NCBI RefSeq assembly: GCF_001194135.2 | Contig: NC_068997.1 | Span: forward strand, 49,876,639-49,940,638 | From: Octopus bimaculoides | Taxonomy: Eukaryota | Reading direction: 5' to 3' | Length of the DNA stretch: 64,000 bases | Shown: one piece after another, positions 12,359 to 34,600 of the stretch | Position numbering within the stretch: the stretch's first letter is position 1 | How the letters are laid out: each line of letters opens with the position of its first letter | Made by a program: the position numbers and the translations under genes | The notes under the pieces: generated by a model | Database searches by the model: none | What the model saw: only the letters and a program-made list of their open reading frames with translations | What the model was told of the DNA's origin: nothing

Positions 12359-13857
12359 ACTAGCAGAGATACCCGGCGTTGCCCGTGTTACATGCAATTG
12401 AAGGATGAGACTTTTCTCTTATATTTCCTGTAAGGAACTGGAATAGATATGATTCGAATTTCATCAAAATTGCACATGAGGGTTCTTTCCCTCTTTACAC
12501 ACCCTAAAAAATTCTAATCATGAGACATGTATCCCATACTATTAATCTTTATGCACATATTCCAAAATTTCAGTCTTCTGGAACCTGTAAAAAGGATTTT
12601 GCTCCTGAAAAATGGAGCTCATGGAGCTCTAAAATGTGGGAATGAAGGCCCCTATTGGAGGTGGGTGTGATAATGTCAACCAGAGAAGTTGAATTGTGGG
12701 GAATGTTTTTAACTTTGGTCTTATAGTATACCTGTATATATGCNNNNNNNNNNNNNNNNNNNNNNNNNNNNNNNNNNNNNNNNNNNNNNNNNNNNNNNNN
12801 NNNNNNNNNNNNNNNNNNNNNNNNNNNNNNNNNNNNNNNNNNNNNNNNNNNNNNNNNNNNNNNNNNNNNNNNNNNNNNNNNNNNNNNNNNNNNNNNNNNN
12901 NNNNNNNNNNNNNNNNNNNNNNNNNNNNNNNNNNNNNNNNNNNNNNNNNNNNNNNNNNNNNNNNNNNNNNNNNNNNNNNNNNNNNNNNNNNNNNNNNNNN
13001 NNNNNNNNNNNNNNNNNNNNNNNNNNNNNNNNNNNNNNNNNNNNNNNNNNNNNNNNNNNNNNNNNNNNNNNNNNNNNNNNNNNNNNNNNNNNNNNNNNNN
13101 NNNNNNNNNNNNNNNNNNNNNNNNNNNNNNNNNNNNNNNNNNNNNNNNNNNNNNNNNNNNNNNNNNNNNNNNNNNNNNNNNNNNNNNNNNNNNNNNNNNN
13201 NNNNNNNNNNNNNNNNNNNNNNNNNNNNNNNNNNNNNNNNNNNNNNNNNNNNNNNNNNNNNNNNNNNNNNNNNNNNNNNNNNNNNNNNNNNNNNNNNNNN
13301 NNNNNNNNNNNNTGTGAGTGTATATATGTATAGATATCTGTATGCATGTATATATGTGTACATATTACATGTACATCTATATATACATCTACACATATGT
13401 ATACATATACATGTATGCATATAGATCTATATCTCTATATATATCTATACATATACGTGTACATATACATGTATATGCATACATATACATCTCTCTCTCT
13501 GAAACCATTAAAGTGAAAGTATCTGTCATTATAGTATCGAAATGTGATTGTTTCAGTTAGTGGAATAGTTTCATTTTTAAAGTGAAAGTATTTGACATGA
13601 GTGTTTTTGTGTCACTTTTGACACGTAATACTTAAATAGTGGAGGAGATATTATGTTGCTGTGGGCTCGAACTATGCAAGAAGTTAAACATTTGTTTTAC
13701 TAAAACACAACCGGGACCCTAAGTAAGGGTAAAATTTGAATGAAATTGGTAAAATTTGAATGAAATTGGTTGTGTAGTTCTCGAGTTTTAGGGAAACACA
13801 CACACACACACACAGACAGACAGACAGACAGACATTTTCATTTTTATATATATAGAT
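12359..13857 (+). mobile_element. Non-autonomous Helitron/Helentron-like element (Lep1/DINE-like), gap inside
   Basis: ACTAGC...TACCCGGCGTTGCCCG start; 3' end with AAATTGGT..GTAGTT, (ACAG)n microsatellite and TATATATAGAT. Continuity across the gap 12744-13312 is assumed. Confidence 0.5.
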
Positions 13858-15720
13858 AACTAGTCCGGATACTTTTTGATACCACTCCGCATTTCATCAA
13901 CCTTGAAATGATGGAAGTCAAAGATGGAAGTCAAAGATGGAAGTCAAATGATGGAAGTTAAATTCAGAATGTAGAGATGTATGAAATCTACTCGGCATTT
14001 TGTCCAGCATACTAAGAATTTTTCCAGGTCACTTATGATGGATATAATAGTAAAAACGTACCAAAAGTATAAATTTGCATTTTATTGAATGTTAATTCAA
14101 CATTATTAATTTCTCAGATAAATAAATTTATGTCATAGTGGAACAGTTCATACAATTCTGTTATCAGTTTCAACTTCGATAAGGGAAGCTTTTATTTATA
14201 TAACAACAATAAAATTAATAACGCGAGGTGAACGTTATTCAAATGAAAAATCTACTGAATTATCAGAAAAATATGACAGCCTAATCTAATCTCAATATTT
14301 ATACATGTTTAAGATAAATGTGGAGGCCATGTTCAATAAAATTCTCATGACCTATTTTAGCAGTGAAATATCATCACCACCATCATCATCATCGTCGTCG
14401 TCGTTGTCCTCGACGTCGTCGTCATCATCATCATTTGAATGTTCATTTTTCCATGCTTACACGAGTTTGACAGAATTTGGTGAAGCAGATTTTCTGCAGC
14501 CCTCCCTGTTTCCAAATAACGTACTATGTTTCCCATGGCCAGACATGTTTGTCGCAAACTACTGAAAACGAAAGACAGCTTGCTTGAGAATGGCACTTGT
14601 TTAGAACGGTCACACAATGTCAAGGCAAGAAGACAGTAACACGCACGCACACACAACAGATTTCTTTTAATTTCTGCCTACCAGTCTCAAGTCTTTGATC
14701 AACCCAGGGCTATAGTAAAAGACATTTGCCGAAAACTATATGGATGAGAAATGAACTTCTTACAGCACAGCCTCACTAAATCCTACTTGAAAGAATATAT
14801 ATATATATATATATATATATANNNNNNNNNNNNNNNNNNNNNNNNNNNNNNNNNNNNNNNNNNNNNNNNNNNNNNNNNNNNNNNNNNNNNNNNNNNNNNN
14901 NNNNNNNNNNNNNNNNNNNNNNNNNNNNNNNNNNNNNNNNNNNNNNNNNNNNNNNNNNNNNNNNNNNNNNNNNNNNNNNNNNNNNNNNNNNNNNNNNNNN
15001 NNNNNNNNNNNNNNNNNNNNNNNNNNNNNNNNNNNNNNNNNNNNNNNNNNNNNNNNNNNNNNNNNNNNNNNNNNNNNNNNNNNNNNNNNNNNNNNNNNNN
15101 NNNNNNNNNNNNNNNNNNNNNNNNNNNNNNNNNNNNNNNNNNNNNNNNNNNNNNNNNNNNNNNNNNNNNNNNNNNNNNNNNNNNNNNNNNNNNNNNNNNN
15201 NNNNNNNNNNNNNNNNNNNNNNNNNNNNNNNNNNNNNNNNNNNNNNNNNNNNNNNNNNNATAAAAAATAAAAACAAAAACTTAAATAACTATATTTTTTA
15301 TTCTTTTACTTGTTTCAGTCATTTTGACTGCGGCCATGCTGGAGCACTAAATACTATATCTGATAGTTAACATCATCAGATATCAATTACATAACAACAT
15401 TTTTCAGGTGCGAGGGGCCGCTAGTGGTTGAGTTAAGAGGATAAACTCCCAGAAACGTTGGTAAAAGAGATAAAAAAAATAAACAGCTACCATAGTAAAC
15501 CAGTTTTATTCCCGCGGGTTTGCCACCGTCTTCCCCACTCGACAGACCACGTTTTCTCCCACCTCCTTCGTCACAATACTTTTTTTTTTTATCTTTGATA
15601 TATAAAAAGAACAAAGAAAAAAAAAAGAGTGTGTTTATCTAAGGGAAATCACTCTCATAGTCATCCAGTGGAAACGAGATAATTCCCGAGAAACTGACGG
15701 TGGAAAAGCAATTTCCAAAC

Positions 15721-18465
15721 ATGAATCGAAAAGATGGAAGCGAACTGGTTATTGGTGATCGTATCGAATGTGAAAATTATTTTGGGACGATAAAATTTAT
15801 AGGACAAGTTGAAGCAATGGAAGGTATTTGGTTTGGTATTGATTGGGATGAAATTCATCGGGGAAAACATGACGGTAGCTATAAAGGTAAGCGTTATTTT
15901 CAAGCAGGCCATCCTAAATCTGGTTCGTTTATTAAACCAATAAAGGCTAAATTGGGACAATCTTTCTCTGATGCTTATGTCTGTAAACTTGGCGATATCA
16001 TAGATGTGCGTTCAACAATTCTGATTCTCGATAATTATGCAATTTATGGTCTTGGTTCCCAGGAAGTGACCAGTCAGTTTTCGGCGATTGCCTCAAAAAT
16101 AACAGAACTAGATCTTTCAGGTAATTTGTTGAAGAACTGGACTCAAGTTGCGGAAATTAGTAGCTTAATTCCTAATCTGTTAAAGTTAAATGTAAGTAAT
16201 AACCGTTTAATAATTTCTGAACACGCAGAAATTTTGTCAAAATCTTTTGCCAATGTAGAGGATCTGGTTTTAAATCGAATGACCTACGACTGGGACGACA
16301 TTTTATCTGCTACGTCGATGTTTCCGTCCCTTCGAGGTTTGTACGTGTGTTTTAATAATTTGGAAAAATTGAATGATCCCACGGGGAAATTGACGAAACT
16401 GAAATTTCTCTCATTAACAGACAATCGCTTAAGTGACTGGAATGAACTTTTAAAACTTGGTCAGCTTCCACAATTGAGCACACTTTATGTGAATAACAAT
16501 CAACTGACAGCTGTCTCTTTTAATGACGTATCTTTGGAAGACGGCGAGAAAACCACATATTTTCGTTCTCTTAAGCGTTTAGATTTAAGCAGCAACCTCA
16601 TCGATAACCTGTCATCAATCGATGAGCTTAGTAAATTAATCAACCTTACCGAGTTTTCTTTCCTTCATAATCCAGCAGCAGATATAGATGAGGACAAACT
16701 ATTTAATCTAATAATTGCCAAAATTGGCAGTTTAAAAAAATATGCCAAAACTATTATCCATGATGAAGTACAGAAAGATGCTGAAATATTTTATCTTCGC
16801 ATGATTGAGAAACAGGCATTAGAGAAAAATATCGGTGAAGAAGACAGAGCTAAAACATGTTCAAGGTACAAAGAGCTAGGACAGAAATATGGTTATGAAT
16901 ATCCTGAGAAGCATTCCCTCCAAGGTAATTTAAAAGACGGCGATATTCCAGAAGAAATGATCAGAAACAAGAAATTATTTCCAGATATGAACCGAAATGA
17001 TGGAAGCAAACTGGTTATCGGTGATCGTATTGAAAGTGAGAATTATTTTGGGACGATAAAATTTATAGGAGAAGTCGACACAATGGAAGGTATTTGGTTT
17101 GGCATTGATTGGGATGAAATTCATCGGGGAAAACATGACGGTAGCTATAAAGGTAGGCGTTATTTTCAAGCAGGCCATCCTAAATCTGGTTCCTTTATTA
17201 ACCCACTTAACATTAACCTCGGACAATCTTTTCCTGATGCTTACATCTGTAAAGCTAAAGATGTTTTAAATGTGCCTTCAAGAGTTCTGATTCTCAATAA
17301 TTTTGCAGTTTATGGTCTTGGTTCCCAGAAAGTAACCAGTCATTTTTTGGTGACTGCCTCAAAATTAACTGAGCTAGATCTTTCTAAAAATCTGTTGAAG
17401 AGTTGGACTCAAGTTGTGGAAATTGCTAACATTATTCCTAATCTAATTACATTAAATTTAAGTAGTAACCGTTTAATAATTCCTGAAAATGTAGAAATGT
17501 TTGCAAAATCTTTTGCAAATGTTGAAGAACTTATTCTGAACAGAATGAACTATGACTGGGCTAACATTTTATCTGTTACATCGATGTTTCCATCCCTTCA
17601 ACGTTTGTACGTGAGTTTCAATAATTTGGAAACATTTATTAATTCCACAGGAAAATTGACAAAGCTAAAATTTCTCTCATTGTCAAACAATTGTATTAGT
17701 GACGCGAATGAACTTTTAAAACTTGGGCAACTTCCTCAGTTGAGTACACTTTATGTAACTAACAATCAATTGACATCTGTCTCTTTTAATGACGTATCTT
17801 TGGAAGATGGCAAGAAAACATCACATTTTTGTTCTCTTGAATGTCTAAGTTTAAACAAGAATAACATCAATGACCTGTCATCAATCGATGAGCTTAGCAA
17901 ACTGGCCAAGCTGACTGATCTTATTTTAGTAAATAACCCATTGGGAGCTGTATATAAGGATAAACTATTTTATATTACCGTTGGTAAAATTGGCAGTTTA
18001 AAAAAATATGATAAAACCTTTATTCGTGATGAAGAAAGGAAAAACGCTGAAGTATATTATCTAGATATGGTTGAGAGGGAGGCATTAGAAAAAAATATCG
18101 GTGAAGAAGACACAGCTAAAACATGTTCAAGGTACAAAGAACTGGTGAAGAAATATGGACATGCGAGTCCCGAATCATTAATATCTAAAACAGTTCTGCT
18201 AAAAGATAAATTAATTGTTGTTGATATCCAAACTGAAAATATTCCTGATAAAGTATTGAAGAACAAGAGATTGTCTCCAGACATAACCATTCTAAAACTG
18301 AAGTCACTTGTACAAAAACTCTTTGGAACTGAAGAAATAACAAACCTTAAACTATCTTATATCAGTAGAGAAAATCCTGAAGTAAAAGTTGAATTAGATG
18401 ATGATTTGAAGCCACTGTCTCATTACAGTATAGAAAATGGTGACAGTTTAATTGCAAAGTGGTAA
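15721..18465 (+). CDS. TBCE: Intronless tandem-fused tubulin-specific chaperone E-like protein, 914 aa: (CAP-Gly + LRR + partial UBL, 422 aa) + (CAP-Gly + LRR + complete UBL, 492 aa)
   Basis: Uninterrupted ORF; first ATG at 15721 (the track start at 15700 is a GTG). Two CAP-Gly domains (GDRIE...GIDWDEIHRGKHDGSYKG.RYF), two LRR arrays (LDLS.NLL..W..V; L..LNVS.NRL; L..LYV.NNQL; NP), LRR cap (AE..YL...RYKEL..KYG) and the TBCE C-terminal UBL ending ELDDDLKPLSHYSIENGDSLIAKW. Unit 2 begins at ATG 16987. Confidence 0.93.
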   Translation: MNRKDGSELVIGDRIECENYFGTIKFIGQVEAMEGIWFGIDWDEIHRGKHDGSYKGKRYFQAGHPKSGSFIKPIKAKLGQSFSDAYVCKLGDIIDVRSTILILDNYAIYGLGSQEVTSQFSAIASKITELDLSGNLLKNWTQVAEISSLIPNLLKLNVSNNRLIISEHAEILSKSFANVEDLVLNRMTYDWDDILSATSMFPSLRGLYVCFNNLEKLNDPTGKLTKLKFLSLTDNRLSDWNELLKLGQLPQLSTLYVNNNQLTAVSFNDVSLEDGEKTTYFRSLKRLDLSSNLIDNLSSIDELSKLINLTEFSFLHNPAADIDEDKLFNLIIAKIGSLKKYAKTIIHDEVQKDAEIFYLRMIEKQALEKNIGEEDRAKTCSRYKELGQKYGYEYPEKHSLQGNLKDGDIPEEMIRNKKLFPDMNRNDGSKLVIGDRIESENYFGTIKFIGEVDTMEGIWFGIDWDEIHRGKHDGSYKGRRYFQAGHPKSGSFINPLNINLGQSFPDAYICKAKDVLNVPSRVLILNNFAVYGLGSQKVTSHFLVTASKLTELDLSKNLLKSWTQVVEIANIIPNLITLNLSSNRLIIPENVEMFAKSFANVEELILNRMNYDWANILSVTSMFPSLQRLYVSFNNLETFINSTGKLTKLKFLSLSNNCISDANELLKLGQLPQLSTLYVTNNQLTSVSFNDVSLEDGKKTSHFCSLECLSLNKNNINDLSSIDELSKLAKLTDLILVNNPLGAVYKDKLFYITVGKIGSLKKYDKTFIRDEERKNAEVYYLDMVEREALEKNIGEEDTAKTCSRYKELVKKYGHASPESLISKTVLLKDKLIVVDIQTENIPDKVLKNKRLSPDITILKLKSLVQKLFGTEEITNLKLSYISRENPEVKVELDDDLKPLSHYSIENGDSLIAKW

Positions 18466-18582
18466 TTTTGGCTTTAATACATTCCTGTCTATGATAACTT
18501 TAAACAGGCAGTTATTCTGCTTTCGTAAAATTGAGGAAATAATAATATTAATTATAATAATAATAATTGTAAAAATAATAAT

Positions 18583-19142
18583 AACAAGAGCACTCAGAGA
18601 GCGCAAACCTCCACCAAGATAACACCAACATCTTGTCAACAATTAGTCAGAGATGATTTTTGAAATGAGAATATCTGAAATAAACTCGTCTGCTCTCACA
18701 AGCGAGAATACTAAAAACGAACTCGACCGCTCTCAAAAATTAAGTAAAACAAACCTGAAAAATAAACCAGAATCCTTCTCTGGTACCTGATAGATCCCAA
18801 TGATAGTCATGAAATGTGAAAGTGACTGTAGAAAATTTAGTAACAGTAATAAGTAGTTTATCCTTATTTAATACAAGCAAAGTTCAATTCATTATTCAAA
18901 ATAGTTACGGCCTAAAGGGAGATAATTGAGAAGGACTTGAAAATTAACATAATATAACAAATAATCCAGACTCCTTGTCCGGTACCCAAAATCTAATTAG
19001 TTCATGCCAGTGACAAGGCCAAACATTCCTGAAAGTTTCATCCAAATCCATCCAGCGGTTCTTGAGATATCTTGAACACGGACAAACAAACAAATATGAC
19101 TGAGAACAATACCTCTGCCTTCGTTAAGGCAGAGGTGATAAT
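18583..19142 (+). mobile_element. Non-autonomous Helentron-type (HINE-like) element just after the TBCE fusion gene
   Basis: AACAAGAGCACTC start, 3' hairpin ACCTCTGCCTT-cgtt-AAGGCAGAGGT; a homologous inverted copy lies at 39455-39819. Confidence 0.65.
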
Positions 19143-19849
19143 TTTTTTTTCAAAATTTTGGTACAAGGTCAGCAATAATGTAAAGAGTTGCAAGAAATGC
19201 CGCTAAGCAATTTGTCCGATGCTTTAACAATTTTGCTAGCATGGTGTCACACAAATGGCACATAGAAGCATCCATTACACTCTGAGAGTAGTTGGCATTA
19301 GGAAGAGCATCCAGCTGTAGAAACCATGCCAAATCAGTCTGGAGTCTGGTGCAGCCTTCCAGCTTCCCAGCCCTGGTTAAACCGTTGAACCCATGCTAGT
19401 ATGGACATTCGACGTTAATGATAATAATAATCAAAATAATAATAATAATTAAGGCATTGAGCTGGCAGAATTATTAACATGCTGGACAGAAATGCTCAGC
19501 AGCATTTCATCTGTCTGTATGTCCTGACTTCAAATTCCACTGAGATCAAATTTACTATCCGTCCTTGCTGGCCTTGTGACAAAATTTGAAACTACCTCCA
19601 ATAATAATAACAATAACACTAATAATTAATACTGTTTTATTCACTGAACTTATATCAAAATTTTGTGTGAAATTTCATAATATATTTTCTTTCTTGCTTT
19701 CTTATTATTTAATTGGTTTGGGACAAACATAATTTAGCTATTTAATATTAAAAAAATCTTGATATATGTTTCATATAAACTTCATATCATTTGCTCATAT
19801 ATTTTGATAATAAAGAAATATTTTTTTACATGCTCCAAATTCATTTTTG

Positions 19850-20200
19850 AATAGAAACTTTGTTCTGCCCACCTGTTTAGTATTGCATTTGAATTTAACC
19901 ATGACACCTGAAAACCAGTCAAAGAAAGAAACAGGACACTTTTGATAGCAGATGTCTCCAGAAAATACTGGACATCAAATGGAACAACTTTATCGGCAGT
20001 AAGGAGGTCAAAAGAAGAACAGACCAATGCCCAGCAGACATCATCATCCGCAAATGCTGAATGAATTGGCTGCAACACGTTGGACTCTTGATGAACAAAT
20101 TCATCAATCAAGTCCTTAAGTGGAAGCCTCAAGGCAACAGCACAGAGGACATCTCAAGATGGACTGGCACCAGATGGTTGGTAGGGACCTGGTAAATCTA
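19850..20200 (+). mobile_element. RTE-type LINE 3' remnant
   Basis: DTFDSRCLQKILDIKWNNFI...IIIRK...VLKWKPQG, the RTE ORF C-terminal pattern with stops. Confidence 0.65.
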
Positions 20201-20648
20201 GGACGAAATGATGTACTGAGAGCATGCTGCTGACTGGATCTTGTTGGAGTGTTTTCACTGCCTCATGTATTACCCATTGTGGAAGCATTTAAATAAAGTC
20301 ATCTAACTACACATCTAGAAAACAACTAATTAAATTTTATAATTTTTTTGAATTCTTTATAATAGGGTTGTTATAAGATTACAAACTGAAAAATTAATTA
20401 GATATGCTATCAGCATGAAAAAAATAGTAGTTAACTTTGGTGTTAACATACTTAATGCTGGAAGATTAAAAAAACCTAACCAGAAATAAGTTAAGTGGTA
20501 ATGAAACAAAGATTAATAGGAACTGAATATTAAAACTTGAAGTACTTTTATCAATATGGAAGACAACTCCTGATACGTTTTGGTATCATTATGACCTCCT
20601 CAGCAAAGTGCAGGATACGCTCTGTGTTATTATATCTACATGTGTACA

Positions 20649-20729
<81 letters not shown>

Positions 20730-20931
20730 GTAAAATACAGGTGCTTATACTTATCAAGTATTACCTCTAAAATTTACAATACCTATATATATATATATAT
20801 AAAATGAAGAACAAACACGAAAAAACAACGTGAGGACATGGTACATGCAAAGTATTAGCAGATGCTCATATATAGAAAATATATATATATGTGTGTGTAT
20901 ATATATATATATATATAAGTAATGTTTATTG

Positions 20932-21286
20932 CCACTTAAACATAGCTGTTCCATAGGAACTGATGTTACTGCTATTTTTAACCCCAGGAGGACGCCACCT
21001 CCAGCTAATTATTCAATGCAATCTGCACTCAATATGTTGCAAGCAGGGAAGTGAACCCCTACCTACGTCCGGCCACAAGACCACCAGACTATGTTTTTGA
21101 TCTCTTATTGGTCATCCTCAGAGGTAGCAGTAGTCCACTGCAGCCTGCAATATATGGAAATCAAGTGACACACAGTCACTGATCTTGCAACAAGCAAATT
21201 AGTTTCGAACTAGCTGGAGGAGGTGACTGCCTGGGGTTAAAAATAGCAGTAACACCAGGTCCTACAGAACAGCCATGTTTAAGTGG
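20932..21286. mobile_element. MITE with ~75-bp imperfect TIRs
   Basis: CCACTTAAACATAGCTG...TTACTGCTATTTTTAACCCCAGG / CCTGGGGTTAAAAATAGCAGTAA...CATGTTTAAGTGG; a related end lies near 61075-61185. Confidence 0.75.
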
Positions 21287-21429
21287 TGATAGGCATTACT
21301 ACTCAGTGTAGTTACTTTCATCTCTTACAGAGATTTTCTAACAAGCTAATTTGCTTATATACAGAGAGAGAGAGAGATGTTTGTGTGCATGTGTATATCA
21401 CTCTTTACTTTGATATCATTAATATCACA

Positions 21430-22540
21430 CGCTAGTATCACTTGACATACAAGGAGTGTCCTTTGTTTCCAATCTTCCAAGAAAAACATGACCAACCATG
21501 GAGAAATATTCTCTGGCTTAGATCTGATACAATGTTTAATATGGAATGTCTCTATTGTTTGTGTAGATTGCTGATCAGATGGAACGTTATGTGTTGAGAA
21601 ACACAATGGTTATCTATATGAAAGCTAAAAGATTTTATGACAATCTGCAGAATAGCCATGAAGCAACTTGTGATGCAAAACCTTTTCTGGTTATTGACTG
21701 CTGGTTTGAAAGGTTTAAAGAAGTGCCTTATTTTGTACAATATTAAAATAGTCAGTGAAGCTGCCACTGCTGATGTAGAGTCTGCTATTAATTATCCTGC
21801 AAAACCAAAGAAACTGATTGCTGAAAAAAGCTACATACCAGAACAAGTGTACAATTTTGATGAAGTTTGGCTTTTCTGGAAGTGTATGTCTGCCAGGACA
21901 TTTAAAAAAAAATTCTGGTGAAGAAAACTGATACCAAACTTTAACCATTTAGCATTTAGATTTTTTTTTTTTCTGTCTTGCGAGTACTTGGTGATTCTGT
22001 CAGTGCAGGTGCCACTTAACCCACCCAAGAGACATAAATGGTGGCACGTAAAAAGTGCCATGCAAATGTGGCCGTTGCCAGTGCCGCCTGACTGGTTCCC
22101 TTGCCAGTGATACATAAAAACCACCCACTATACTCTCGGAGTGGTTGACATTAGGAAGGGCATCCAGCTGTAGAAACCTTGCCAGATCAGATTGGAGCCT
22201 GGTGCAGCCTTCTGGTTCACCAGTCCTCAGTCAAACCGTCCAATCCATGCCAGCATGGAAAACAGACCTTAAATGATGATGATGATGTTCTTTCTGATAA
22301 CATCAGAATGGAATACAACCTTGAGAACACAGCTTCTTTGCTCCAGATCAAGGTGACTTGATTAACTTCAAGGTTTATTATCTGAAAAGAACTTTTGGAC
22401 AATGTAGAAAAGCAGTTGATAGGATAGATAATGCTAGCGTGAAAGATGTCTGGGAAAAGTTCCACATTATGGAATTATGATGGATGCTGTGGATGATGTC
22501 AGGTGAAGGAATCAAGTCATGGCTATGAATGGTATTGAAG
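21430..22540 (+). mobile_element. pogo/Tigger (TIGD1-like) transposase remnant, interrupted by a SINE
   Basis: LYNIKIVSEAATADVESAINYP...SYIPEQVYNFDE..LFWKCM..RTF. Confidence 0.7.
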
Positions 22541-22792
22541 GTTGTATATATAAATGCTTCATCTAGGTGTATTTTTTTTATTGTGTAACAAAAATTTTCT
22601 CTTTATCTGATGAATTTCTCATGAGAAATTCTTTACATGTGTATATAACATGTAAATCTCTGTAACAGCTATTAGCAAATGAAACATGTATAATGCAGAA
22701 TAAATAATACCAAAACATTTCCACTTTCCTGTTTTGTTATATATGTATACTCTTTGTATGTATGTATAATATATGTATATATATGTAATATA

Positions 22793-22823
<31 letters not shown>

Positions 22824-24791
22824 CAAATAATAAATGAGTATATGCATATATACGTACATGTATGTACATACCTACATTTACCTGTATATATAGATGCATA
22901 TCTGGGTACAGGACGTTAAATATATACGTATATGTATGTACTTACATATATATGTATATATATTATGTATGTATATAATGAGAAGAGAAGAAGAATAAGA
23001 AGAGACATGAATAATGTAAGTTTTTAAATGAGTAGTAAATTAGATAGAAATAGTGTAAGGCAATGAACAAAAAACAACTACACACACAAACAAACAAACA
23101 TATATATATATATAATGTACTGATCCATGATAGAAAATTCAACAAAAAATGTACTCCATCTGGTGAGAGATAAATATTATTTATTTAAAGGACACAATGC
23201 ATGCATTAAAGTGCTACTAATAGTTTCATATGTTGAGAAAACTCAAACATATTCTTCAGATGCAAACCACATATCATAACAAAAAAAAAATTCTTTAGTT
23301 CATTATGATATATGATTTGCACCTGGAGAATATGTTTCAGTTTTATTTATGCCCCAAAAACCTGCTTAACAATGGTTTCAAATTTTGACGCAAGGCCAGC
23401 ATGTTCCAGGGAAGGGAGAAGTCGATTACCTCAACTCTAGTGCTTGACTTGTACTTATTTTATCGATCCTGAAAGAATAAAAGGCAAAGTCGACCTCGGC
23501 AGAAATTGAACTCAGAACCTAAAGACAGGTGAAATGCCGCTAAGCACTTTGCCCAGCATGCTAATGATTAAGCCAGCTTGCTGCCTTACACCAGCTTAAA
23601 AATCCTTTCTGCTGCAGACAGAAGGCTGGAAATTTTAGGGGAGGGTGCTGATCAATTACGTTGAACCCAGGGCTCAGCTGGGGCTTATTTTTACATCAAT
23701 CCTGAAAGGATGAAAGACGAAGTTAAGCTTCACAGAATTTGAACTCTGAGCATAAAGATGGATGAAATGCTACTAAGCATTTTGTCCAGCATGCTAACAA
23801 TTATTTTACTAAATGTTTAATTGCAAAATAAATTGAAACAAAGGTGGTATATGGTAACAAAAGGGTTAAATAGTATCTGTTACATGATTGGTGCATATTT
23901 TATTAACTGCGTGGATTAAAGATTTAACTTCAGTTTGGTGGGTTTTGAAATCAGATGTAAAGTATTTAGATACCATTGTTCTCTACTGACACAGACGTGG
24001 GTATGGAGTTAAGAAGTTTGCTTCAGCAATCACATGGGTTGAGGTTCAATCTCACTGAATAGCATTTTGGGTAAATGCCTTCTACAATAGCCCTGCACTA
24101 ATCAAAGCCTTGTGAGCAAATTTGGTTGACGGAAACTTAAATACAAGACATTTTGTCTAACTCTCCACTGATTCCGTAAACCACTTCTCTCTCAAATAAT
24201 CCGTACTTCTACAAGCATAAGTCCCAAAATTTTTTGTAGAAGGAGCTAGTCGATTACATCAACACCAATGCTCAACTGGTATTTATTTCATGCCTCTTCA
24301 TCTCCAAAAGGATGAAAGATAAAATCAACCTTGAATTGAGAACCTAAAGACAGATGGAATGCTTCTGAGCATGTTGTCTGACATGTTAATGAATCTGCCA
24401 GCTTGTTCTCTTTCAAATAATAATAATTTCTCATCATGAGGAGATGGGTTCATTTTACTCGTTTCAGTCATTATCTGTAGTCATACAGGGGTACTATTAT
24501 AAAGGGTTCAGTCAATCAACAGTGTATGAATTTTGAAGTCTAGTACTTATTCCATCAGGCATTTTTGCTGAACCACTAAGTTACAAGTATGGAAACAGAC
24601 CAACACTAGTTGTCAAGTAGAGAGAGAGACAAACATAAACACGATTACAGTTCTGAAAGAAGGACTCCAGCATGAGCTTAGCTTTCATGGTGAAAACAAA
24701 ACTAAAACACTAAAAAAAAAAACTCTGAAGTGTATCAAACTTTTAATAAAAGTTCATGCAGGAAATATTTTACAAAGCAGAAGAGTTGCCT

Positions 24792-25552
24792 CGGATCTTT
24801 GGGGTTTGACGGGCAACATTTGTTTTCTTAACGAAACACTTTCAAACTTGGGACACTGGTAGAATGTGTCATATAAAACTTCTTCTCTTAACCTTCTTAA
24901 CAAAAAATTGTACATCGCAAGTTATTTCATGTTAAATTTGTCGTATTTCTGTAATTTCAACCAATCACTGACGTCTATTCAGCTGAATACAGTTACTGCT
25001 GTTCGGTGTCAAGTGTGTTATTCCCTGTTTAATTATATCATTATTCCCTAGTAAGGGTTTAGGGTTTTAGGGTTCGGGTTTTAGGGTGTTAGGGTTAGGG
25101 TTATGAGTTATAGGGTTAGAGTTAAGGTTATGGCAAAAATAATCATAAAACTAACCCTAACTCTAAAACCNNNNNNNNNNNNNNNNNNNNNNNNNNNNNN
25201 NNNNNNNNNNNNNNNNNNNNNNNNNNNNNNNTAAAGCTAAAACCAATACAAACGCACGAACGATGTCATAAATAAGAGTAACACGGGTAGTTGTTGACAA
25301 ACAACGGGACTAATTTTATTCAAGGGAAAAGATCCCATGACACCGTTACTCAATTAATTGTTTTCACCTCAATAGACGTCAGTGGTGGGTTGAAATTACC
25401 GAAATACGACAATTTTTTACATAAAATAACTTCGAATACAAAATTTTTTATCTGTTCTATACCACAAAATATACAAATATTCGAAGTTTGAAAGGTTTTC
25501 GGTACCAAAAACACTACAAAAAAAATGTTGCCCGTCAAACCCCAAAGATCCG
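24792..25552. mobile_element. Non-autonomous DNA transposon with perfect 30-bp TIRs, 6-bp TSD (TTGCCT) and internal telomere-like repeats, inserted in the 3' UTR of the minus-strand TBCE
   Basis: CGGATCTTTGGGGTTTGACGGGCAACATTT at both ends; TTGCCT directly outside each end; the flanks rejoin to match the paralog's 3' UTR. Confidence 0.88.
25052..25170. repeat. Degenerate interstitial (TTAGGG)n followed by (CCCTAA)n
   Basis: ttagggttttagggttcgggttttagggtgttagggttaggg... then ctaaccctaactctaaaacc up to a gap. Confidence 0.8.
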
Positions 25553-25598: not shown

Positions 25599-27077
25599 TT
25601 ACCATTTTGCAACGAGGTTATCACCATTTTCTATACTGTAATACGACAGTTGATGCAAATCATTCTCTAATTGAACTTCCACTTTAGAATTTTTTTTACT
25701 GATATAAGATAATTCTAGGTTAGTTATTTCTTCAATTTTAAAGAGTTTTTGTACAAATAACTTCAGTTTTAGAATGGTCATGGTTGGAGATAATTTCTTG
25801 TTCTTGAACACTTTATCAGGAATATTAACGGTTTGAATATCAACTGCAACTAATTTATCTCGTAGAACACTAGTTTTGGTTATCAATGATTCAGGACTTG
25901 CATGTCCATAAAACCTTACCAGTTCTTTGTATCTCGAACATGTTTTAGCTCTGTCTTCTTCACTGATATTTTTCTCTAATGCGTGTTTCTCAACCATGCG
26001 TAGATAAAATATTTCAGCATTTTTCCGTTCTTCGTCACGGAAGTCGGCTTTTGCATATTTTTTTAAACTGCCAATTTTGGCAATTATCAAATTAAATAGT
26101 TTGTCCTCATCTATATCTGCTGCTGGATTATGAAGGAAAGAAAACTCGGTAAGGTTGGTTAATTTACTAAGCTCATCGATTGATGACAGGTTATCGATGA
26201 GGTTGCTGCTTAAATCTAAACACTTAAGAGAACGAAAATATGTGGTTTTCTCGCCGTCTTCCAAAGATACGTCATTAAAAGAGACAGCTGTCAGTTGATT
26301 GTTATTCACATAAAGTGTGCTCAATTGTGGAAGCTGACCAAGTTTTAAAAGTTCATTCCAGTCACTTAAGCGATTGTCTGTTAATGAGAGAAATTTCAGT
26401 TTCGTCAATTTCCCCTTGGGAGCATTCAATTTATCCAAATTATTAAAACACACGTACAAACCTCGAAGGGACGGAAACATCGACGTAGCAGATAAAATGT
26501 CAACCCAGTCGTAGTTCATTCGGTTTAAAACCAGATCTTGTACACTAGCAAAATATTTTGACAAGTTTTCCGCGTGTTCAGGAATTGTTAAACGGTTATC
26601 ACTTATATTCAATTTTAACAAATTAGGAATTAAGCTAGTAATTTCCGCAACTTGAGTCCAGTTCTTCAACAAATTATCAGAAAGATCTAGTTCTGTTATT
26701 TTTGAGGCAATCGCCGAAAACTGACTGGTCACTTCCTGGGAACCAAGACCATAAATTGCATGATTATTGAGAATCAGAATTCTTGAAGGCACATCAATAA
26801 CATCTTTAACTTTACAGAGATAAGCGTCAGGGAAAGATTGTCCTAATTTGGCCTTTACCGGTTTAATAAACGAACCTGATTTAGGATGGTCTGCTTGAAA
26901 ATAACGCCTACCTTTATAGCTACCGTCATGTTTTCCCCGATGAATTTCATCCCAATCAATACCAAGCCAAACTCCTTCCATTGCGTCAACTTCTCCTATA
27001 AATTTTATCGTCCCAAAATAATCATCACATTCAATACGATCACCAATAACCAGTTCGCTTCCATCTTCTCGATTCAT
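25599..27077 (-). CDS. TBCE: Intronless single-unit tubulin-specific chaperone E-like protein, 492 aa (CAP-Gly, LRR, UBL)
   Basis: Open ORF from ATG 27077 (track start 27098 is TTG) to TAA 25599. GKHDG CAP-Gly motif, LRRs and UBL ending QLENDLHQLSYYSIENGDNLVAKW. Same length as unit 2 of the fused gene and collinear with it. Confidence 0.93.
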   Translation of the reverse strand: MNREDGSELVIGDRIECDDYFGTIKFIGEVDAMEGVWLGIDWDEIHRGKHDGSYKGRRYFQADHPKSGSFIKPVKAKLGQSFPDAYLCKVKDVIDVPSRILILNNHAIYGLGSQEVTSQFSAIASKITELDLSDNLLKNWTQVAEITSLIPNLLKLNISDNRLTIPEHAENLSKYFASVQDLVLNRMNYDWVDILSATSMFPSLRGLYVCFNNLDKLNAPKGKLTKLKFLSLTDNRLSDWNELLKLGQLPQLSTLYVNNNQLTAVSFNDVSLEDGEKTTYFRSLKCLDLSSNLIDNLSSIDELSKLTNLTEFSFLHNPAADIDEDKLFNLIIAKIGSLKKYAKADFRDEERKNAEIFYLRMVEKHALEKNISEEDRAKTCSRYKELVRFYGHASPESLITKTSVLRDKLVAVDIQTVNIPDKVFKNKKLSPTMTILKLKLFVQKLFKIEEITNLELSYISKKNSKVEVQLENDLHQLSYYSIENGDNLVAKW

Positions 27078-29387
27078 GTTTGGAGATTTCAGTTTCAAGG
27101 AATTATCTCGCTTTCACCGGGCATCACTCCACTTATTTCCCTTAGATAGATAATCTTTTTTTTTTTTTTTAATTACATCAACCCATTTAAACGATTTCGG
27201 GACGGAATTTTAAGAATATTCATACTTAATATTTAATTATATATTTGATGTAATTTTTTTAATAGTATCTTCTTTGGTTTCAGTTTGTTAACGGTCAATT
27301 TCCTAGTTCAATGCATTTCTGCAAGGGAACATCTTATACTCGGAGAACTTTATTCTATCAACACCGGTTTTAAGGAATGTTCTGTCCATCTTCACCAACA
27401 TCAGTCACACACACATCNNNNNNNNNNGAAATTACTGGCCTTGTGCCAAAATTTGAAACTATTGTTTTTTTTTGGGTTTTAAAATGTGGCATATCTACAG
27501 TTTGGTGCCCCGATCCGATTTTTTACCTTCGTAACATCCTGTTTCGCTGCATATTTCTTAATGAAATTTTGCAGAGCTGCATTTTTAAATGTGTTGCTTT
27601 CGATTATGTTCATGCATCCCGACTTTACGAATAGCTTACTCCTATATAAATCGACGATATCCAATAACTTGAATATTTTCGATTGTAACGTAAACACTGG
27701 TTAGTTTTATTTGGGAGCAGCACATTTATTTCTTTATTGCCCACAGGGGGCTAAGCATAGAGGGGACAAACAAGGACAGACAAAGGGTTTAAGCATTTCG
27801 CCCGGGCATGCTAACGATTCTGCCAGCTGACATTCCCAGACCAAATACTCCCAACTCCAGAACTGAGCAATTCTACAACTCTATAATAAGCACTGTGTTG
27901 TATTTTGCGTTTATTCTTTTACTTGTTTCAGGCATTTGACTGCGATCATGCTGGAGCACCGCCTTTTAGTCGAGCAAATCGACCCCCAAGACTTATTCTT
28001 TGTAAGCTTGATACTTATTCTATCGGTGTCTTTTGCCGAACCTCTAAGTTACAGGGACATAAACATACCAACATCGGTTGTCAAGGGAGGTGGGGGAACA
28101 AAGACAAATAAATATATATATGTATGTATGACGGGCTTCTTTTAGTTTCCGTCTCCCAAATCCATTCACAAAGTTCTGGTCAGTCAGAGGCTTTAGTAGA
28201 AGACATTTGCCCAAGGTGCCACGCAGTGGGACTGAACCCAGATCCATGTGGCTAGGAAGCAAGCTTCTTACCACACATCTATGCCTGTGTCTATACACTA
28301 TTTTATACAGTGTTAAACTACATTTTAACCTCAAACTAATTGGTATCATGTTAAGGTATTCACCTGAAGATAATCAGTTGATGAAGTTAAAATTATTCAA
28401 ATAAAAACAAATGAAATTACCCAACTTAAAACAAACAAAAAATCCCAGTTCCTTTGAGTCAGACAACAAAATAATAAGCGTATATTAGAAAAAAATCTCC
28501 ATTGGTCATGAATGACCATGGGATTGCACATACACGGTTACCCTCTGAGGCACAAGTCTCAGCTGTAGCAAGGGGAAAACATTTTTAAAAGAAAATTTCT
28601 CTTGTTGGTTGAGAAGTGCTCAGTTTTGTTTAAGAGCATATTGAGTAGTGTACCTTGGACAACACTACTCATTGCGCTGTTTTAAGACAATAAGGGAGTA
28701 ATTTGAGAGAGATTTAGCAGTTAGTATATATCATTGTTGGCACTCCGTCGCTTACGACGTCGAGGGTTCCAGTTGATCCGATCAACGGAACAGCCTGCTC
28801 GTGAAATTAACGTGCAAGTGGCTAAGCACTCCACAGACACGTGTACTCTTAATGTAGTTCTCGGGGATATTCGGCGTGACACAGTGTGACAAGGCTGACC
28901 CTTTGAATTACAGGCACAACAGAAACAGGAAGTAAGAGTGAGAGAAAGTTGTGGTGAAAGAGTACAGCAGGCGAACCCTGCTGTACTCTTTCGCCTGCTG
29001 TACTCCCTGCCGGAGCCACGTGGAGCTTTAGGTGTTTTCGCTCAATAAACACTCACAACGCCCAGTCTGGGAATCGAAACCGTGAGTCCGCTGCCCTAAC
29101 CCCTGGGCCATTGCGCCTCCACTAGAAGCTCTCTAGTGAGAATGAAATGTACATCGTCGTTGAGAGTTATCTCCCTTGAAATTACACCTCGCATGTCCTG
29201 TTAAGACCATGTGTTGGTGAATTCCTATCTTATTCGTCCCATCATGGAATAATTAACATCAAGGAATCAAATATCGAAGAAGAAATCAAAAAAGGGCTTA
29301 CTAAACTTTGTATTAGTTAAGTTCTATTCTTTCCTGTGTCTCAGTTTCCCTGACTGTTATTTGTGTTTATTAATTTTCATCTTAAAA

Positions 29388-29858: not shown

Positions 29859-31600
29859 CACGCAAATGTTGAACAATGAGAATGAGTGCTCAACATCGCA
29901 TTGGTGGCTAAAAAGTCTTTATCTGTGTATTTATCTGCGCTTAATAACGACTGTTTTGTTTATGTCCCCCTAATACAGCGTTTCGGTAAAAGAGACCGAT
30001 AGAATAAGCACCAGATTTTTTTTTTTAATAAAGTATTGGGGTCGATTTGTTCACCTAAACCTGTCAAAGTGATTCCCTCTAGCATGACTGGGTACTACTA
30101 AAGCAGCGCGGACGCGCGACTGCGTGTTCGGATCCGCGAGTGCCCATGACTGTAGTCCAATGGCTGAAACAAGTAAAAGCTATATATATATATATATTGA
30201 AAGTTTGTTTACGGGAAATGTTTTGAAAATGCAAATAAAGCCGCTATTCCATGGTGCTGTTATAGCATGCCACTTATTCCATCGGTCTCTTTTGCCTAAC
30301 TGCTAAATTAGGGGTTGATTCATTCAACTAAAAATTCTTAAAAGCTGTGCCCCAGCACGGCCGCAATTGATGACTGAAGCAAGTAAAAGACAAGAAAATT
30401 GCTACAGCTATAGCAACCATGCGTAAACGGACAGTGGAACCCAGTGTGGCTTGAGGCCTTGTTAGCTCCTGTCAAATTATCCAACTTATGTCAGCATGGA
30501 GAACAGGTATTAAATGATGATGGAACTGTGTGGAAGCCTGTCATATAGGGCTTTCCTATAAGTAGGTTATCTCCCTTGGCTAGGCGGCGCTCCATGTAGA
30601 TAATTAAACTTCCGGAGGCTACCCACGCCATTGTTATTGTTTTACGTCTTATCATGGATATAAAGCAGCTTGATGATTCAGCTATCGAAGTACTTACTGT
30701 GCCTGAGTTAAAGAAATATTTAAGATTATATGGACAATATGTTACTGAAAGAAAGGCGGACTTGATTGAAAGGTATAAAAATTCTGTCGATATGGCAACA
30801 AAGTAAATTCATNNNNNNNNNNNNNNNNNNNNNNNNNNNNNNNNNNNNNNNNNNNNNNNNNNNNNNNNNNNNNNNNNNNNNNNNNNNNNNNNNNNNNNNN
30901 NNNNNNNNNNNNNNNNNNNNNNNNNNNNNNNNNNNNNNNNNNNNNNNNNNNNNNNNNNNNNNNNNNNNNNNNNNNNNNNNNNNNNNNNNNNNNNNNNNNN
31001 NNNNNNNNNNNNNNNNNNNNNNNNNNNNNNNNNNNNNNNNNNNNNNNNNNNNNNNNNNNNNNNNNNNNNNNNNNNNNNNNNNNNNNNNNNNNNNNNNNNN
31101 NNNNNNNNNNNNNNNNNNNNNNNNNNNNNNNNNNNNNNNNNNNNNNNNNNNNNNNNNNNNNNNNNNNNNNNNNNNNNNNNNNNNNNNNNNNNNNNNNNNN
31201 NNNNNNNNNNNNNNNNNNNNNNNNNNNNNNNNNNNNNNNNNNNNNNNNNNNNNNNNNNNNNNNNNNNNNNNNNNNNNNNNNNNNNNNNNNNNNNNNNNNN
31301 NNNNNNNNNNNNNNNNNNNNNNNNNNNNNNNNNNNNNNNNNNNNNNNNNNNNNNNNNNNNNNNNNNNNNNNNNNNNNNNNNNNNNNNNNNNNNNNNNNNN
31401 NNNNNNNNNNNNNNNNNNNNNNNNNNNNNNNNNNNNNNNNNNNNNNNNNNNNNNNNNNNNNNNNNNNNNNNNNNNNNNNNNNNNNNNNNNNNNNNNNNNN
31501 NNTGGTCAGTTTGACAGGATCTGATGGACCAAAGGACTGCTTCATGTTCCAGTGTTTGATTAGCATGGTTCTTCAGCTGGATACCTTTCCTAATGCCATA

Positions 31601-31637
<37 letters not shown>

Positions 31638-34600
31638 ATTATTTTAGTCTCTAAGCACTGATGAAAAGTTTGGTAAAAAAATCATAATGGAGTATCCTGT
31701 ATGTTGTAAATCTATTTGGTCTTATGCATCTGAGGAGATGCATAAAAAACATATAATAACAGATAATAACTTTATCACAAAATGCTATGATGATAAAAAT
31801 AAACCTTCTTTTCTATAATGTTATTCAATAAAACCACCTTCAGCTTCAATAGCTACTTCTATATGAGATCTAAATCATCTGCATGCTCGAATCAAGTGGT
31901 TTTGCTTCATTTTGGACATTACTCTGACTCTTAGAATCTTTGGTGTTATGGGCTTGTTCATTGACCTCTCTCTCAACAATACTCGACATGTAAAAGTCCA
32001 ATGGATTGAGATTTGGGGAATTAGGAAGGCCAAATGTTAGGGGTTGTGTGACCATGAAAATTTTCAGCCATCCATTCCTGTGTTACTAGAGCCATGTGTG
32101 ATAGTGCAGTCTTACTGAAACACACATGGCCTTCCTTTGCAGACAGTCTATCCAGGGCTTAATTATTTCCAGGACCTCAATGTAGGCGGCAGAGTTAAAT
32201 CTAAGGCCTTGTGGAAAGAAGTAAGGAGGCATCACATGTCCTTCATTGCTGACAACCCCTAAAACCATGACAGTTATAGGAAATTTTGTATGCATAACAC
32301 TTGGATCTTCAGAAGGGTCTGCACATAACCATCTGCCATTTCTTCTGTCAACTTTTTGATCTTGGTCGAAGTTTTTCTCGTTTGAGGAAAAACCAAATCA
32401 AATCTTCTTCTGCTGGATTTTTCAGTTTGTTTAGGAGTCTTTTAGATCTGATGTAGTGATTTTCTTTTGCTTTTTCTGACAAATTGACCTTTCTTCATCA
32501 TATAATGTCTTTGTGGACAACATTTCTGACTGTTCCTTCTGACACATGGAGATCTTTTGCAACTGACCTCATTGACTTTCTGGTGTTGTAATCAATGGTC
32601 TGTTGAACTTGCAGGATTAATTCAGGTGTTCTGATGAGTTCAGAACATTTAGAATGTTTTTTATGCTTTGATACTGGTGATACGTTTCCATATTCATCTT
32701 CTAACTCCTTACAAACTTTATAGACAAAAGATCTGACAACTTTTAAAAATCAAGATATTTCTAAATCACTATGCTCAGCATTTGTAATCACAATAACAAC
32801 ATAAGTCTTCATTGCCCCGCTGTGTGATATGGTGGGCTCTGAGGGGGCTAGGGATTGACGAGTGGCTGGTGAAATCTGTACAGACCATGGGCAAAGTCAC
32901 TGTCAGTAAGGCGGGAGTTAACCACGAGTACAGCGAAGAATTTGGTATACAGGGTAGGAGTTCATCAAGACTCAGTCCTTAGTCCCCTCCACTGTCCGCC
33001 AGGCCACAACAGAAGAATTCAAGACCGGTCGCACCTGGGGAGCTACTATATGCTCATGATCTTGCCTTCATAGCGGATTCTGTATGAGAGCCAGACGAGA
33101 AATTCCAGGTGTGGAAATAAAACTTGGAATTTAAGGGCCTAATGGTTAACTTAGCAAAAACTAAGGGCCTCGTAAGCAAGAAAACTGACAGGACCCTACC
33201 CCACTCAGATAGGTGGTCCTGTTTGATTTGTAGGAAAGGTGTAGGCAGGGACTTTATACGGTGTACCCAGTGTAAGCTATGAACACACAAGCGGTGCAGT
33301 CAATTAATAAGAAGGTTATCGGAGAAGATAGCTTTCGTATGTGGAAATGCACAGGATCCAGGAAAAACTTTCGAGACTCGGGAAATTGATTCTCTCAAAT
33401 ACCCTGGTGGCTCAGTAGAGGTAGTCGATAATTTCTGCTGCCCAGGGCACCAAATTAGTAGCGGGGGAGGATGCACAGAGAGTGTGATAGCTAGAATAAG
33501 AATAGGATGAAGGAAATTCAGAGAGCTGTTACCTCTGTTAGCCACGAAAAGTTTCTCTTTCCGAGTGAAAGGAAGATTGTATGATGCCTGTATACAGACA
33601 GCACTTCTACATGGTAGTGAGACGTGGGCCCTAAATGCAGAGGACATGCAAAGGTTAGAAAGGAATGTGGCTGGTATGCTCCGCTGGAGGTGTAATGTAA
33701 GTTTAATTAGTGTACAAGAGAGAAGACTGCGCTGGTTTGGTCATGTGATGCGGATGGATGCCGACAACTCCATAAAGAAGCGCCGATCTCTCAAAGTAGA
33801 TGGAACACGTGGAAGTTGCAGACATCGGATGTAGTACTGAAGAATGACCTCAGGAAGCTGAACCTTTCAGGGGATCAAGGTACCTGGCGCCTTGCTGTAC
33901 TCAAGAAGACCTGCACTCCGCTGCAGAAGTGTTAAGACCGCTCCCGCTAGTGGTGAAAAGCACTCGTGGCGGTACCACGTAAAAGCACCCAGCACACTCT
34001 GAAAAGTGGTTGGCGTTAGGAAGGGCATCCAGCCTTAGAAACCATGCCAAACCAGACTGGGGTCTGAAGCAGCTTACTAGCTCTGATCAAACCGTCCAAC
34101 CCATGCCAGCATGGTCAGCGGACGTTAAACAATGATGATGATTCTTCGGAGATGGTATCACCAATCTGAAACATTTTGTTTGGCAATTTCCGTAAAAGAA
34201 TTTTATTTCTTTAATATTTTTTTTTTCAACTTACTCACCGACCTATATAGACATACATTTATAAACTTACATAAATATTCATATATACACATACATACAC
34301 TAAAAATACACACATTAACGATTTGTGAAAACATAAAAGATGTATGTATGTGTATGTGAGTGTGTTCAAGTTTGTGTTTCTCTGTTTAACACGCTCTCCC
34401 GTGAACGTCAAAGACAATGGTGTGTGTGTGTATGTATGTGTGTGTGCGCGCGCACGCGACCGTATATTTCATTGTTCTTCTGGAAAAAAAAAAGACGAGA
34501 TGGTCTTTGTTGGAATGTCTCTGATCCAGTGGTGTAGCGTGTCTCTTGACTGTGCCTCTTCCTTGAACATAACATACCCTCAACTCTCCATGTTTTGATG

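Follow-up and report, generated by a model that had tools for sequence, protein, structure and literature searches.

An Octopus gene fuses two tandem copies of an intronless TBCE paralogue in a single open reading frame

Tubulin-specific chaperone E (TBCE), normally present as one gene copy with one module, is a strongly conserved component of the machinery that assembles and disassembles the alpha/beta-tubulin dimer. Here, we analyzed a 64,000-nucleotide stretch of Octopus bimaculoides DNA (assembly GCA_001194135.2, chromosome CM046617.1; hereafter the window) and found that it carries a double TBCE, a genuine Octopus gene in which two tandem copies of an intronless TBCE paralogue have been joined in frame. 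The overall best explanation, to which we assign a probability of roughly 0.6, is that retrogene-like tandem copies of TBCE were fused into a protein that would present two alpha-tubulin-binding arms on one TBCD anchor.

An earlier reading of the DNA, made from the letters alone and referred to here as the sequence-only reading, had proposed a single uninterrupted open reading frame (ORF) of 914 codons holding two TBCE units of 422 and 492 aa. The frame was confirmed: it opens with an ATG at 15721 and closes with a TAA at 18463–18465, and an alternative upstream in-frame GTG at 15700 would lengthen it to 921 codons. In 500 shuffles of the 2742 nt of the ORF, the longest stop-free run was 170 codons and the mean was 72, as against 914 in the real sequence. 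Unit 1 comprises residues 1–422 and unit 2 residues 423–914; their end-to-end alignment showed 66–68% amino acid and 82% nucleotide identity. Pfam analysis of the 914-aa protein revealed two CAP_GLY stretches (E 7e-42), leucine-rich repeat (LRR) families in both halves and one Ubiquitin_2 domain (residues 833–907), and the GKHDG motif is kept in the CAP-Gly domain of each unit. The protein most similar in the Protein Data Bank (PDB) was human TBCE (9m1k_E, E 3.7e-69), and all best database matches were TBCE.

The exact 914-aa protein of the window is present in NCBI/UniRef/EukProt, where it clusters with two further 914-aa proteins, CAI9735554.1 of O. vulgaris and XP_029647177.1 of O. sinensis; each of them bears the name 'tubulin-specific chaperone E-like'. 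These two orthologs, encoded at the loci that we call L001 and L003, respectively, are 90–91% identical to the window protein. In both species the annotated gene range of the double gene equals the length of the coding sequence (CDS; 2745 bp), which indicates that the CDS is a single exon, and the alignment of the window gene with that of O. vulgaris contains 0 indels across 914 codons. In the window, the double ORF lies inside an ungapped stretch (15260–25170); the nearest N-gap (14822–15259) ends 461 bp upstream of the ATG, so part of the promoter region is unassembled. The junction between the units has the same structure in the O. vulgaris (GCA_951406725.2) and O. sinensis (GCA_006345805.1) assemblies as in the window. 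Since three independent assemblies share it, a misjoin is excluded, and misassembly, against which the sequence-only reading had wished to see the junction checked, was rejected. The fusion took place before O. bimaculoides diverged from O. vulgaris and O. sinensis.

Selection was measured as the ratio of nonsynonymous to synonymous substitution rates (dN/dS) against O. vulgaris, using the NG86 method with bootstrap 95% limits; YN00 and maximum-likelihood estimates agreed. A third TBCE copy in the window, gene B, was included. The values were:

Unit 1: dN/dS 0.24 (95% limits 0.15–0.38), the lowest of the three units
Unit 2: dN/dS 0.34 (95% limits 0.24–0.55)
Gene B: dN/dS 0.31 (95% limits 0.19–0.53)

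Between unit 1 and unit 2 of the window, dN/dS was 0.39 at a dS of 0.47. Stop-creating changes make up 5% of the possible point changes, about 20 of them would be expected at the synonymous rate, and the probability of finding no stop at that rate is approximately 1e-9. The double gene is not a pseudogene; both of its units are open and evolve under purifying selection. Its orthologs are likewise intact, with no sign of the disruption or the dN/dS near 1 that would have spoken for decay. The proposal that selection acts on the open frame holds for the ortholog comparisons and for the comparison between units; its unit 1 part is weakened by gene conversion with gene B, described below. It could be supposed that the double ORF is an assembly artefact of two adjacent genes, or a decaying pseudogene, as 16 N-runs make the window a gap-rich draft and short-read assembly could confuse copies this similar. 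The occurrence of this junction and of all 914 codons in GCA_951406725.2 and GCA_006345805.1, the position of the junction in ungapped sequence, dN/dS values well below 1 and the tiny probability of an open frame under neutrality make this exceedingly improbable.

The features of the double gene, all on the + strand, are as follows.

15721–18465, +: fused double TBCE gene, single-exon ORF of 914 codons plus TAA
15751–15942, +: CAP-Gly domain 1, residues 11–74, GKHDG kept; Pfam CAP_GLY; AlphaFold2 (AF2) predicted local distance difference test score (pLDDT) 86–95
16096–16755, +: LRR block 1, residues ~126–345, aligned to the canonical LRR region; AF2 alternating strand/helix, pLDDT 75–91
16762–16890, +: three-helix bundle 1, residues 348–390; AF2 helices 348–369, 373–379 and 383–390
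16891–16986, +: linker, a degenerate stub of ubiquitin-like domain (UBL) 1, residues 391–422; 10-codon in-frame deletion and strong divergence from unit 2 and gene B
16969–16992, +: fusion junction, with Met423 as the unit 2 start codon; short sequence common to the UBL start and to the 5' untranslated region (5'UTR)/ATG of the units
17017–17208, +: CAP-Gly domain 2, residues 433–496, GKHDG kept; second Pfam CAP_GLY stretch
17362–18021, +: LRR block 2, residues ~548–767; best Pfam LRR_4/LRR_8/LRR_9 stretches at 624–780; AF2 pLDDT 86–96
18028–18156, +: three-helix bundle 2, residues 770–812; AF2 helices 770–790, 795–801 and 805–812
18217–18462, +: the sole complete UBL, residues 833–914; Pfam Ubiquitin_2 at 833–907; conserved C-terminal Trp at its end

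The predicted product is therefore one 914-residue chain of the form [CAP-Gly-LRR-3HB]-linker-[CAP-Gly-LRR-3HB-UBL], where 3HB is the three-helix bundle, presumably translated as a single polypeptide. The CAP-Gly domains of units 1 and 2 and of gene B are intact at near-invariant residues, all such positions being retained in unit 1, and the LRR consensus positions are kept in both units. Three helices were predicted between LRR and UBL in both units, with many conserved positions changed; the region of bundle 1 is homologous to the three-helix bundle described in PMC12881605. The UBL matched 1wjn and 4icu in the PDB, both TBCE UBL structures, and AF2 gave it a beta-grasp fold (residues 832–913). 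For the whole chain, AF2 returned a mean pLDDT of 79 and folded both modules as CAP-Gly, LRR and three helices, from an alignment of 50 rows whose coverage was uneven, canonical sequences covering the CAP-Gly of unit 1 and the LRR-UBL part of unit 2. Residues 391–423 scored a pLDDT below 50 and are read, on the strength of this model, as a probable flexible linker of about 33 residues.

How the two units came together can be read in part from the junction. Unit 1 is colinear with unit 2 and gene B into the UBL and breaks at ...AAGAAATTATTTCCAGAT|ATG AAC CGA..., and the peptide that spans the junction reads ...EEMIRNKKLFPDMNRNDGSK...; the junction peptide given by the sequence-only reading, DIPEEMIRNKKLFPDMNR, is present exactly as written. 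In the gene B UBL segment 'KKLSPTM|TILKLK', the Met aligns with the start codon of unit 2, which places the cut of unit 1 about 23 residues into the UBL. The sequence-only reading was right that only the last unit has a full UBL; its wording can be refined, in that the cut of unit 1 falls inside that domain and not ahead of it. The remaining UBL stub is conserved, 4 of its 32 aa differing between species. The 18–24 nt up to and including the ATG of each unit are nearly identical to the UBL sequence at the break; with the pattern AAATTATCTCCAA[A/C]CATG, the O. vulgaris gene B 5'UTR/ATG matched the pre-UBL sequence of gene B in the window at 17 of 18 positions. Past this repeat of about 20–27 nt, the 5' flanks showed no significant similarity to the coding sequence that precedes the UBL (p 0.04–0.8 against shuffles).

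The simplest origin of the gene would be a deletion or unequal recombination of tandem copies at this short repeat. Recombination or deletion between the short sequence inside the UBL of the upstream copy and the near-identical 5'UTR/ATG sequence of the downstream copy would have eliminated the spacer between the copies together with most of UBL 1 and the stop codon that followed it, with the frame kept. The repeat before the ATGs may be the substrate of that recombination or the footprint of later gene conversion, and we favour neither. A possible further trace of tandem copies occurs in O. vulgaris and O. sinensis: 2.4 kb upstream of their double genes, both species have a relic that consists of a unit-2-type UBL tail (39 codons) and 3' flank. 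The tail is 96–97% identical to each species' own unit 2 tail, and the positions are:

L001 7404–7642 and 7880–8083; L003 7375–7625: relic upstream of the double gene, whose equivalent place in the window is the N-gap 12744–13312

Judged by this similarity, the relic may be what is left of a former third tandem copy upstream.

The relationship of the octopus units to other TBCEs was examined with an exhaustive HMMER scan, in which gene B served as the query against 1.84 billion representatives. Its own cluster came first, followed by gastropod TBCE at 42% identity; the next-nearest representatives were from an annelid, starfish, insects, a mite and a coral. A neighbour-joining tree was built from 62 proteins, including six octopus units (three each from two species). 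The six units form one clade (100/100 bootstraps) on a long stem among molluscs, and within it the pair of unit 1 and gene B is sister to unit 2 (100/100 bootstraps). No unnamed transcript-derived protein grouped with the octopus clade in the tree. In all three units, about 35 residues are missing between CAP-Gly and LRR, in the region of the first canonical repeat (residues ~100–125), as are about 8 residues in the three-helix bundle (residues ~365–370), and the units have numerous substitutions in common at positions that other TBCEs conserve. They belong to a divergent, intronless, octopus-specific clade. Among the long matches of the exhaustive scan, none had CAP-Gly-LRR twice. Eight candidates for other double TBCEs were rejected: P0222 and P0290 contain several CAP-Gly domains, P0306 and P0234 have domains of unrelated kinds fused to them (bromodomain; Arf/G-alpha), and P0025, P0304, P0275 and P0323 are long single-module TBCE-like proteins.

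That TBCE is normally a single-module, multi-exon gene, as the sequence-only reading had stated, was borne out by the canonical proteins of about 520–545 aa and by Haliotis TBCE, which spans 12 kb and has at least 13 coding blocks, spread over some 10.5 kb. Against this multi-exon gene, the intronless octopus copies are retrogene-like, and their lack of introns may reflect intron loss by retroposition. No canonical or intermediate cephalopod TBCE was found in the top 120 of a mollusc-profile search, in the exhaustive scan or in the tree, octopus genomes not having been searched directly; this suggests, short of proof, that Octopus has no TBCE other than the intronless family. A broader proposal would be that octopuses, perhaps cephalopods, lost the multi-exon TBCE, so that a fast-evolving intronless family runs tubulin biogenesis with the 914-aa member as a two-armed chaperone; we put this forward tentatively, as a rather doubtful extension.

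Gene B is an intronless gene of 492 aa with a single full CAP-Gly-LRR-3HB-UBL set. It went unnoticed in the sequence-only reading, was located by tblastn of the units against the window and lies convergent with the double gene, 7.1 kb apart.

25599–27077, −: gene B, third TBCE copy, 492 aa, intronless; CDS 27077–25602, stop 25601–25599
27078–27170, −: 5' flank of gene B, homologous to the 5' flank of unit 1
15614–15720, +: 5' flank/presumed 5'UTR of the double gene, common to gene B and conserved in O. vulgaris
18466–18510, +: 3' flank/presumed start of the 3'UTR of the double gene, common to gene B
15721–16640 against 27077–26158: gene-conversion region, unit 1 against inverted gene B

The orthologs of gene B, P0068 (O. 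vulgaris) and P0069 (O. sinensis), show about 90% identity and the same convergent arrangement; in O. vulgaris the double gene and gene B lie on the same chromosome, 11 kb apart. These 492-aa proteins were also considered as isoforms of the double gene, and this was rejected, as they are orthologs of the separate gene B.

Unit 1 and gene B share 91% nucleotide identity over 15614–16877 against 27170–25921, including 107 bp upstream of the ATG, and unit 2 and gene B share 82% over 16977–18510 against 27087–25554, including 45 bp past the stop. Conversion was tested with four-sequence site patterns, using unit 1 and gene B in O. bimaculoides and O. vulgaris. Orthology was supported by 57 sites, similarity within a species by 30 and the third pattern by 0. 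All but one of the 30 concerted sites fall in nt 1–920 of unit 1 (CAP-Gly and LRR), and the orthology-supporting sites lie at nt 267–315 and beyond nt 1029; some 150-nt windows are 98–100% identical between unit 1 and gene B within one species. Unit 1 and the inverted gene B are thus still exchanging sequence by gene conversion. A dN/dS of 0.5–0.67 between unit 1 and gene B was considered as a sign of relaxed selection and rejected, being confounded by this conversion. Unit 2 differs from both other copies by about 18% at the nucleotide level, which indicates that it has not been converted and that its constraint is its own.

The structural basis for a functional proposal comes from a cryo-electron microscopy study of the TBCD-TBCE-Arl2 (TBC-DEG) complex (PMC12881605). 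In that work, TBCE consists of a CAP-Gly domain, eight LRRs, a three-helix bundle and a ubiquitin-like (Ubq) domain; the Ubq domain, together with the 3HB, anchors TBCE on the TBCD spiral, while the LRR-CAP-Gly arm swings along alpha-tubulin. By analogy, the most likely function of the octopus protein would be that of two arms on one anchor. The fused protein would dock on TBCD-Arl2 via the single C-terminal 3HB/UBL of unit 2, and unit 1, unable to dock on TBCD alone, would serve as a second alpha-tubulin-binding arm tethered by about 33 flexible residues. This second arm could raise the avidity or local concentration for alpha-tubulin, or could hold a second alpha-tubulin or a tubulin tail, and gene B would supply the ordinary one-armed TBCE. 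Both TBCD docking and bivalent tubulin binding are predicted on this analogy, and the bivalent tubulin chaperone or depolymeriser proposed in the sequence-only reading is likewise a putative role.

Several observations weigh against this interpretation. The pTM (predicted template modelling score) of the AF2 model was only 0.50 and does not inform on the relative arrangement of the modules, and the 914-aa database cluster consists solely of genome-derived models. At 17200–17211, two conserved basic residues are gone from the CAP-Gly of unit 2 (R to N, K to N/H). In unit 2 numbering, it carries N72 and N75 (H75 in O. vulgaris), where canonical TBCEs have R and K and both other octopus copies, unit 1 and gene B, two lysines (K); the loss lies beside the CAP-Gly core and is specific to unit 2. 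A poly(A) remnant and target-site duplications were sought around both genes and none was found; all that was seen was an A/T-rich microsatellite at 18538–18587, and no comparable sequence 3' of gene B. The marks of retroposition may have eroded with age. Of 108 columns at least 85% conserved in 56 canonical TBCEs, 101.5 are retained on average by the canonical proteins themselves and no fewer than 88 by any of them, and the octopus copies keep fewer:

Gene B: 80–81 of 108 columns kept
Unit 2: 76–78 of 108 columns kept
Unit 1: 66–67 of 108 columns kept, with a further 17 columns absent, mostly from the missing UBL

The octopus units are altered at 23–28 of the 108 positions, and the changes are concentrated in the TBCD-contacting three-helix bundle, which makes TBCD docking an assumption. 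Finally, the constraint and open frame of unit 1 may be partly borrowed from gene B via conversion, and in its unconverted tail (codons 346–422) dN/dS was 0.30 with an interval of 0.08–1.42, which includes 1.

The last point bears on an alternative in which only unit 2 and gene B are functional, unit 2 being expressed from an internal promoter or start in or past unit 1, and unit 1 being an untranslated or dispensable leader that conversion keeps open. The extent of conversion over nt 1–920 of unit 1, a tail whose dN/dS is not significantly below 1 and the absence of a UBL anchor from unit 1 speak for this alternative. Yet in three species the frame of unit 1, about 80 unconverted codons included, continues into unit 2 with no stop; the stub has changed in length only by an in-frame loss of 30 nt, and dN/dS is lowest in unit 1 among the three units. 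Moreover, the fusion deleted unit 2's own upstream region, leaving no unit 2-specific upstream sequence beyond about 20 nt, which makes the fused transcript the simplest expression route for unit 2, and a 1.27-kb leader with many AUGs would be expected to hinder translation from Met423. Unit 2 is probably expressed via the fused transcript, and we consider a functional unit 2 behind a dispensable leader unlikely.

The divergence of the octopus units raises another alternative: the 914-aa protein may be translated and its second arm not be bivalent, acting instead as an autoinhibitory or decoy module, or the protein may have a non-TBCD role, e.g., as a microtubule-associated binder of tubulin tails. 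This would fit the strong divergence at canonical TBCE positions, chiefly in the 3HB, the long stem branch of the octopus clade, and dN/dS values of 0.2–0.4 that are high for a core chaperone, judged against typical housekeeping values. It sits poorly with the retention of the CAP-Gly signature, the LRR scaffold, the UBL and the C-terminal Trp, and with the profile search, exhaustive scan and tree having yielded no canonical cephalopod TBCE that could take the housekeeping role. We regard such a non-bivalent function as quite improbable, and retain two alpha-tubulin arms on one TBCD anchor as the preferred explanation.

Compared with known systems, the octopus protein is closest to TBCE itself (yeast Pac2), the TBC-DEG subunit that binds alpha-tubulin and assembles with TBCD-Arl2 and TBCB. 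With TBCE it shares the domain order CAP-Gly (GKHDG), LRR, predicted three-helix bundle and UBL, and its clade nests among mollusc TBCEs. It differs in carrying CAP-Gly-LRR-3HB twice in one 914-aa chain with one UBL, whereas the canonical protein has one module; the octopus locus comprises three units as opposed to one canonical gene, and the double gene has no introns, unlike Haliotis TBCE with its coding blocks. By every sequence criterion except the one-module rule, the double protein classifies as TBCE, with a unit 1 that lacks the UBL. CLIP-170 and CLIP-115, which act at microtubule plus ends, also have two CAP-Gly domains per polypeptide, and the octopus CAP-Gly matches restin/CLIP structures at E ~1e-9. 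However, the CAP-Gly domains of CLIPs adjoin each other and precede a long coiled coil and C-terminal zinc knuckles, whereas those of the octopus protein are 422 residues apart, each heading an LRR-3HB module, and Pfam shows no CLIP-specific domain. In the octopus gene an entire TBCE module has been duplicated, and this layout has no homology to that of the CLIPs. TBCEL (LRR and UBL, no CAP-Gly) is likewise a TBCE relative with an altered domain complement, and gave a weak match (P0066); in contrast to it, octopus unit 1 keeps CAP-Gly and lacks the UBL, and the octopus units group with TBCE proper. With retrogene fusions, the locus shares an intronless CDS as against multi-exon orthologues, local duplicates with conversion, and a presumed fusion by short-repeat deletion, but the octopus genes have no demonstrable poly(A) tail, target-site duplications or surviving parent gene.

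Other features of the window were noted. Its gaps amount to 5.3 kb of N (e.g., 1484–2392, 12744–13312, 14822–15259, 30813–31502 and 46412–46957), and TA/CA microsatellites flank many of them. A dispersed repeat of about 150–170 bp, probably a short interspersed nuclear element (SINE)-like element, occurs in at least 8 copies on both strands, 74–82% identical between copies, and is also present in the O. vulgaris loci.

19259–19431, 22119–22286, 33976–34128 and 45692–45864: dispersed-repeat copies
47260–47423, 49513–49666, 51063–51216 and 55264–55407: dispersed-repeat copies, continued

At 44422–44560 (+), a short ORF piece reads ...SPIFGLDCEMV..., which we take to resemble the first motif of a DEDD exonuclease. 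The O. vulgaris neighbour of gene B is an RNase_T-domain protein (L002 1–3312), and the piece may be an exon of this syntenic neighbour; Pfam gave no match for its 73 aa, and none in a test of five window ORFs apart from the TBCE genes.

The double TBCE has already been auto-annotated in three Octopus species and is apparently undescribed in the literature; we found no report of TBCE in octopus or cephalopods, of TBCE retrogenes or of TBCE tandem duplicates. If the proposed function is true, one TBCD anchor with two alpha-tubulin arms would be a stoichiometry unseen in any studied TBC-DEG machine. A natural one-anchor, two-arm protein, selected in at least two octopus lineages, would offer a ready test of the arm-and-anchor model and of whether the handling of tubulin is limited by the number of arms. 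If, in addition, the intronless family is the sole octopus TBCE, a core housekeeping chaperone would have been replaced by a retrocopy and then remodelled. Such a replacement would be of interest given the very large, microtubule-rich nervous systems of octopuses. Otherwise, the gene would be a lineage-specific paralogue of modest interest.

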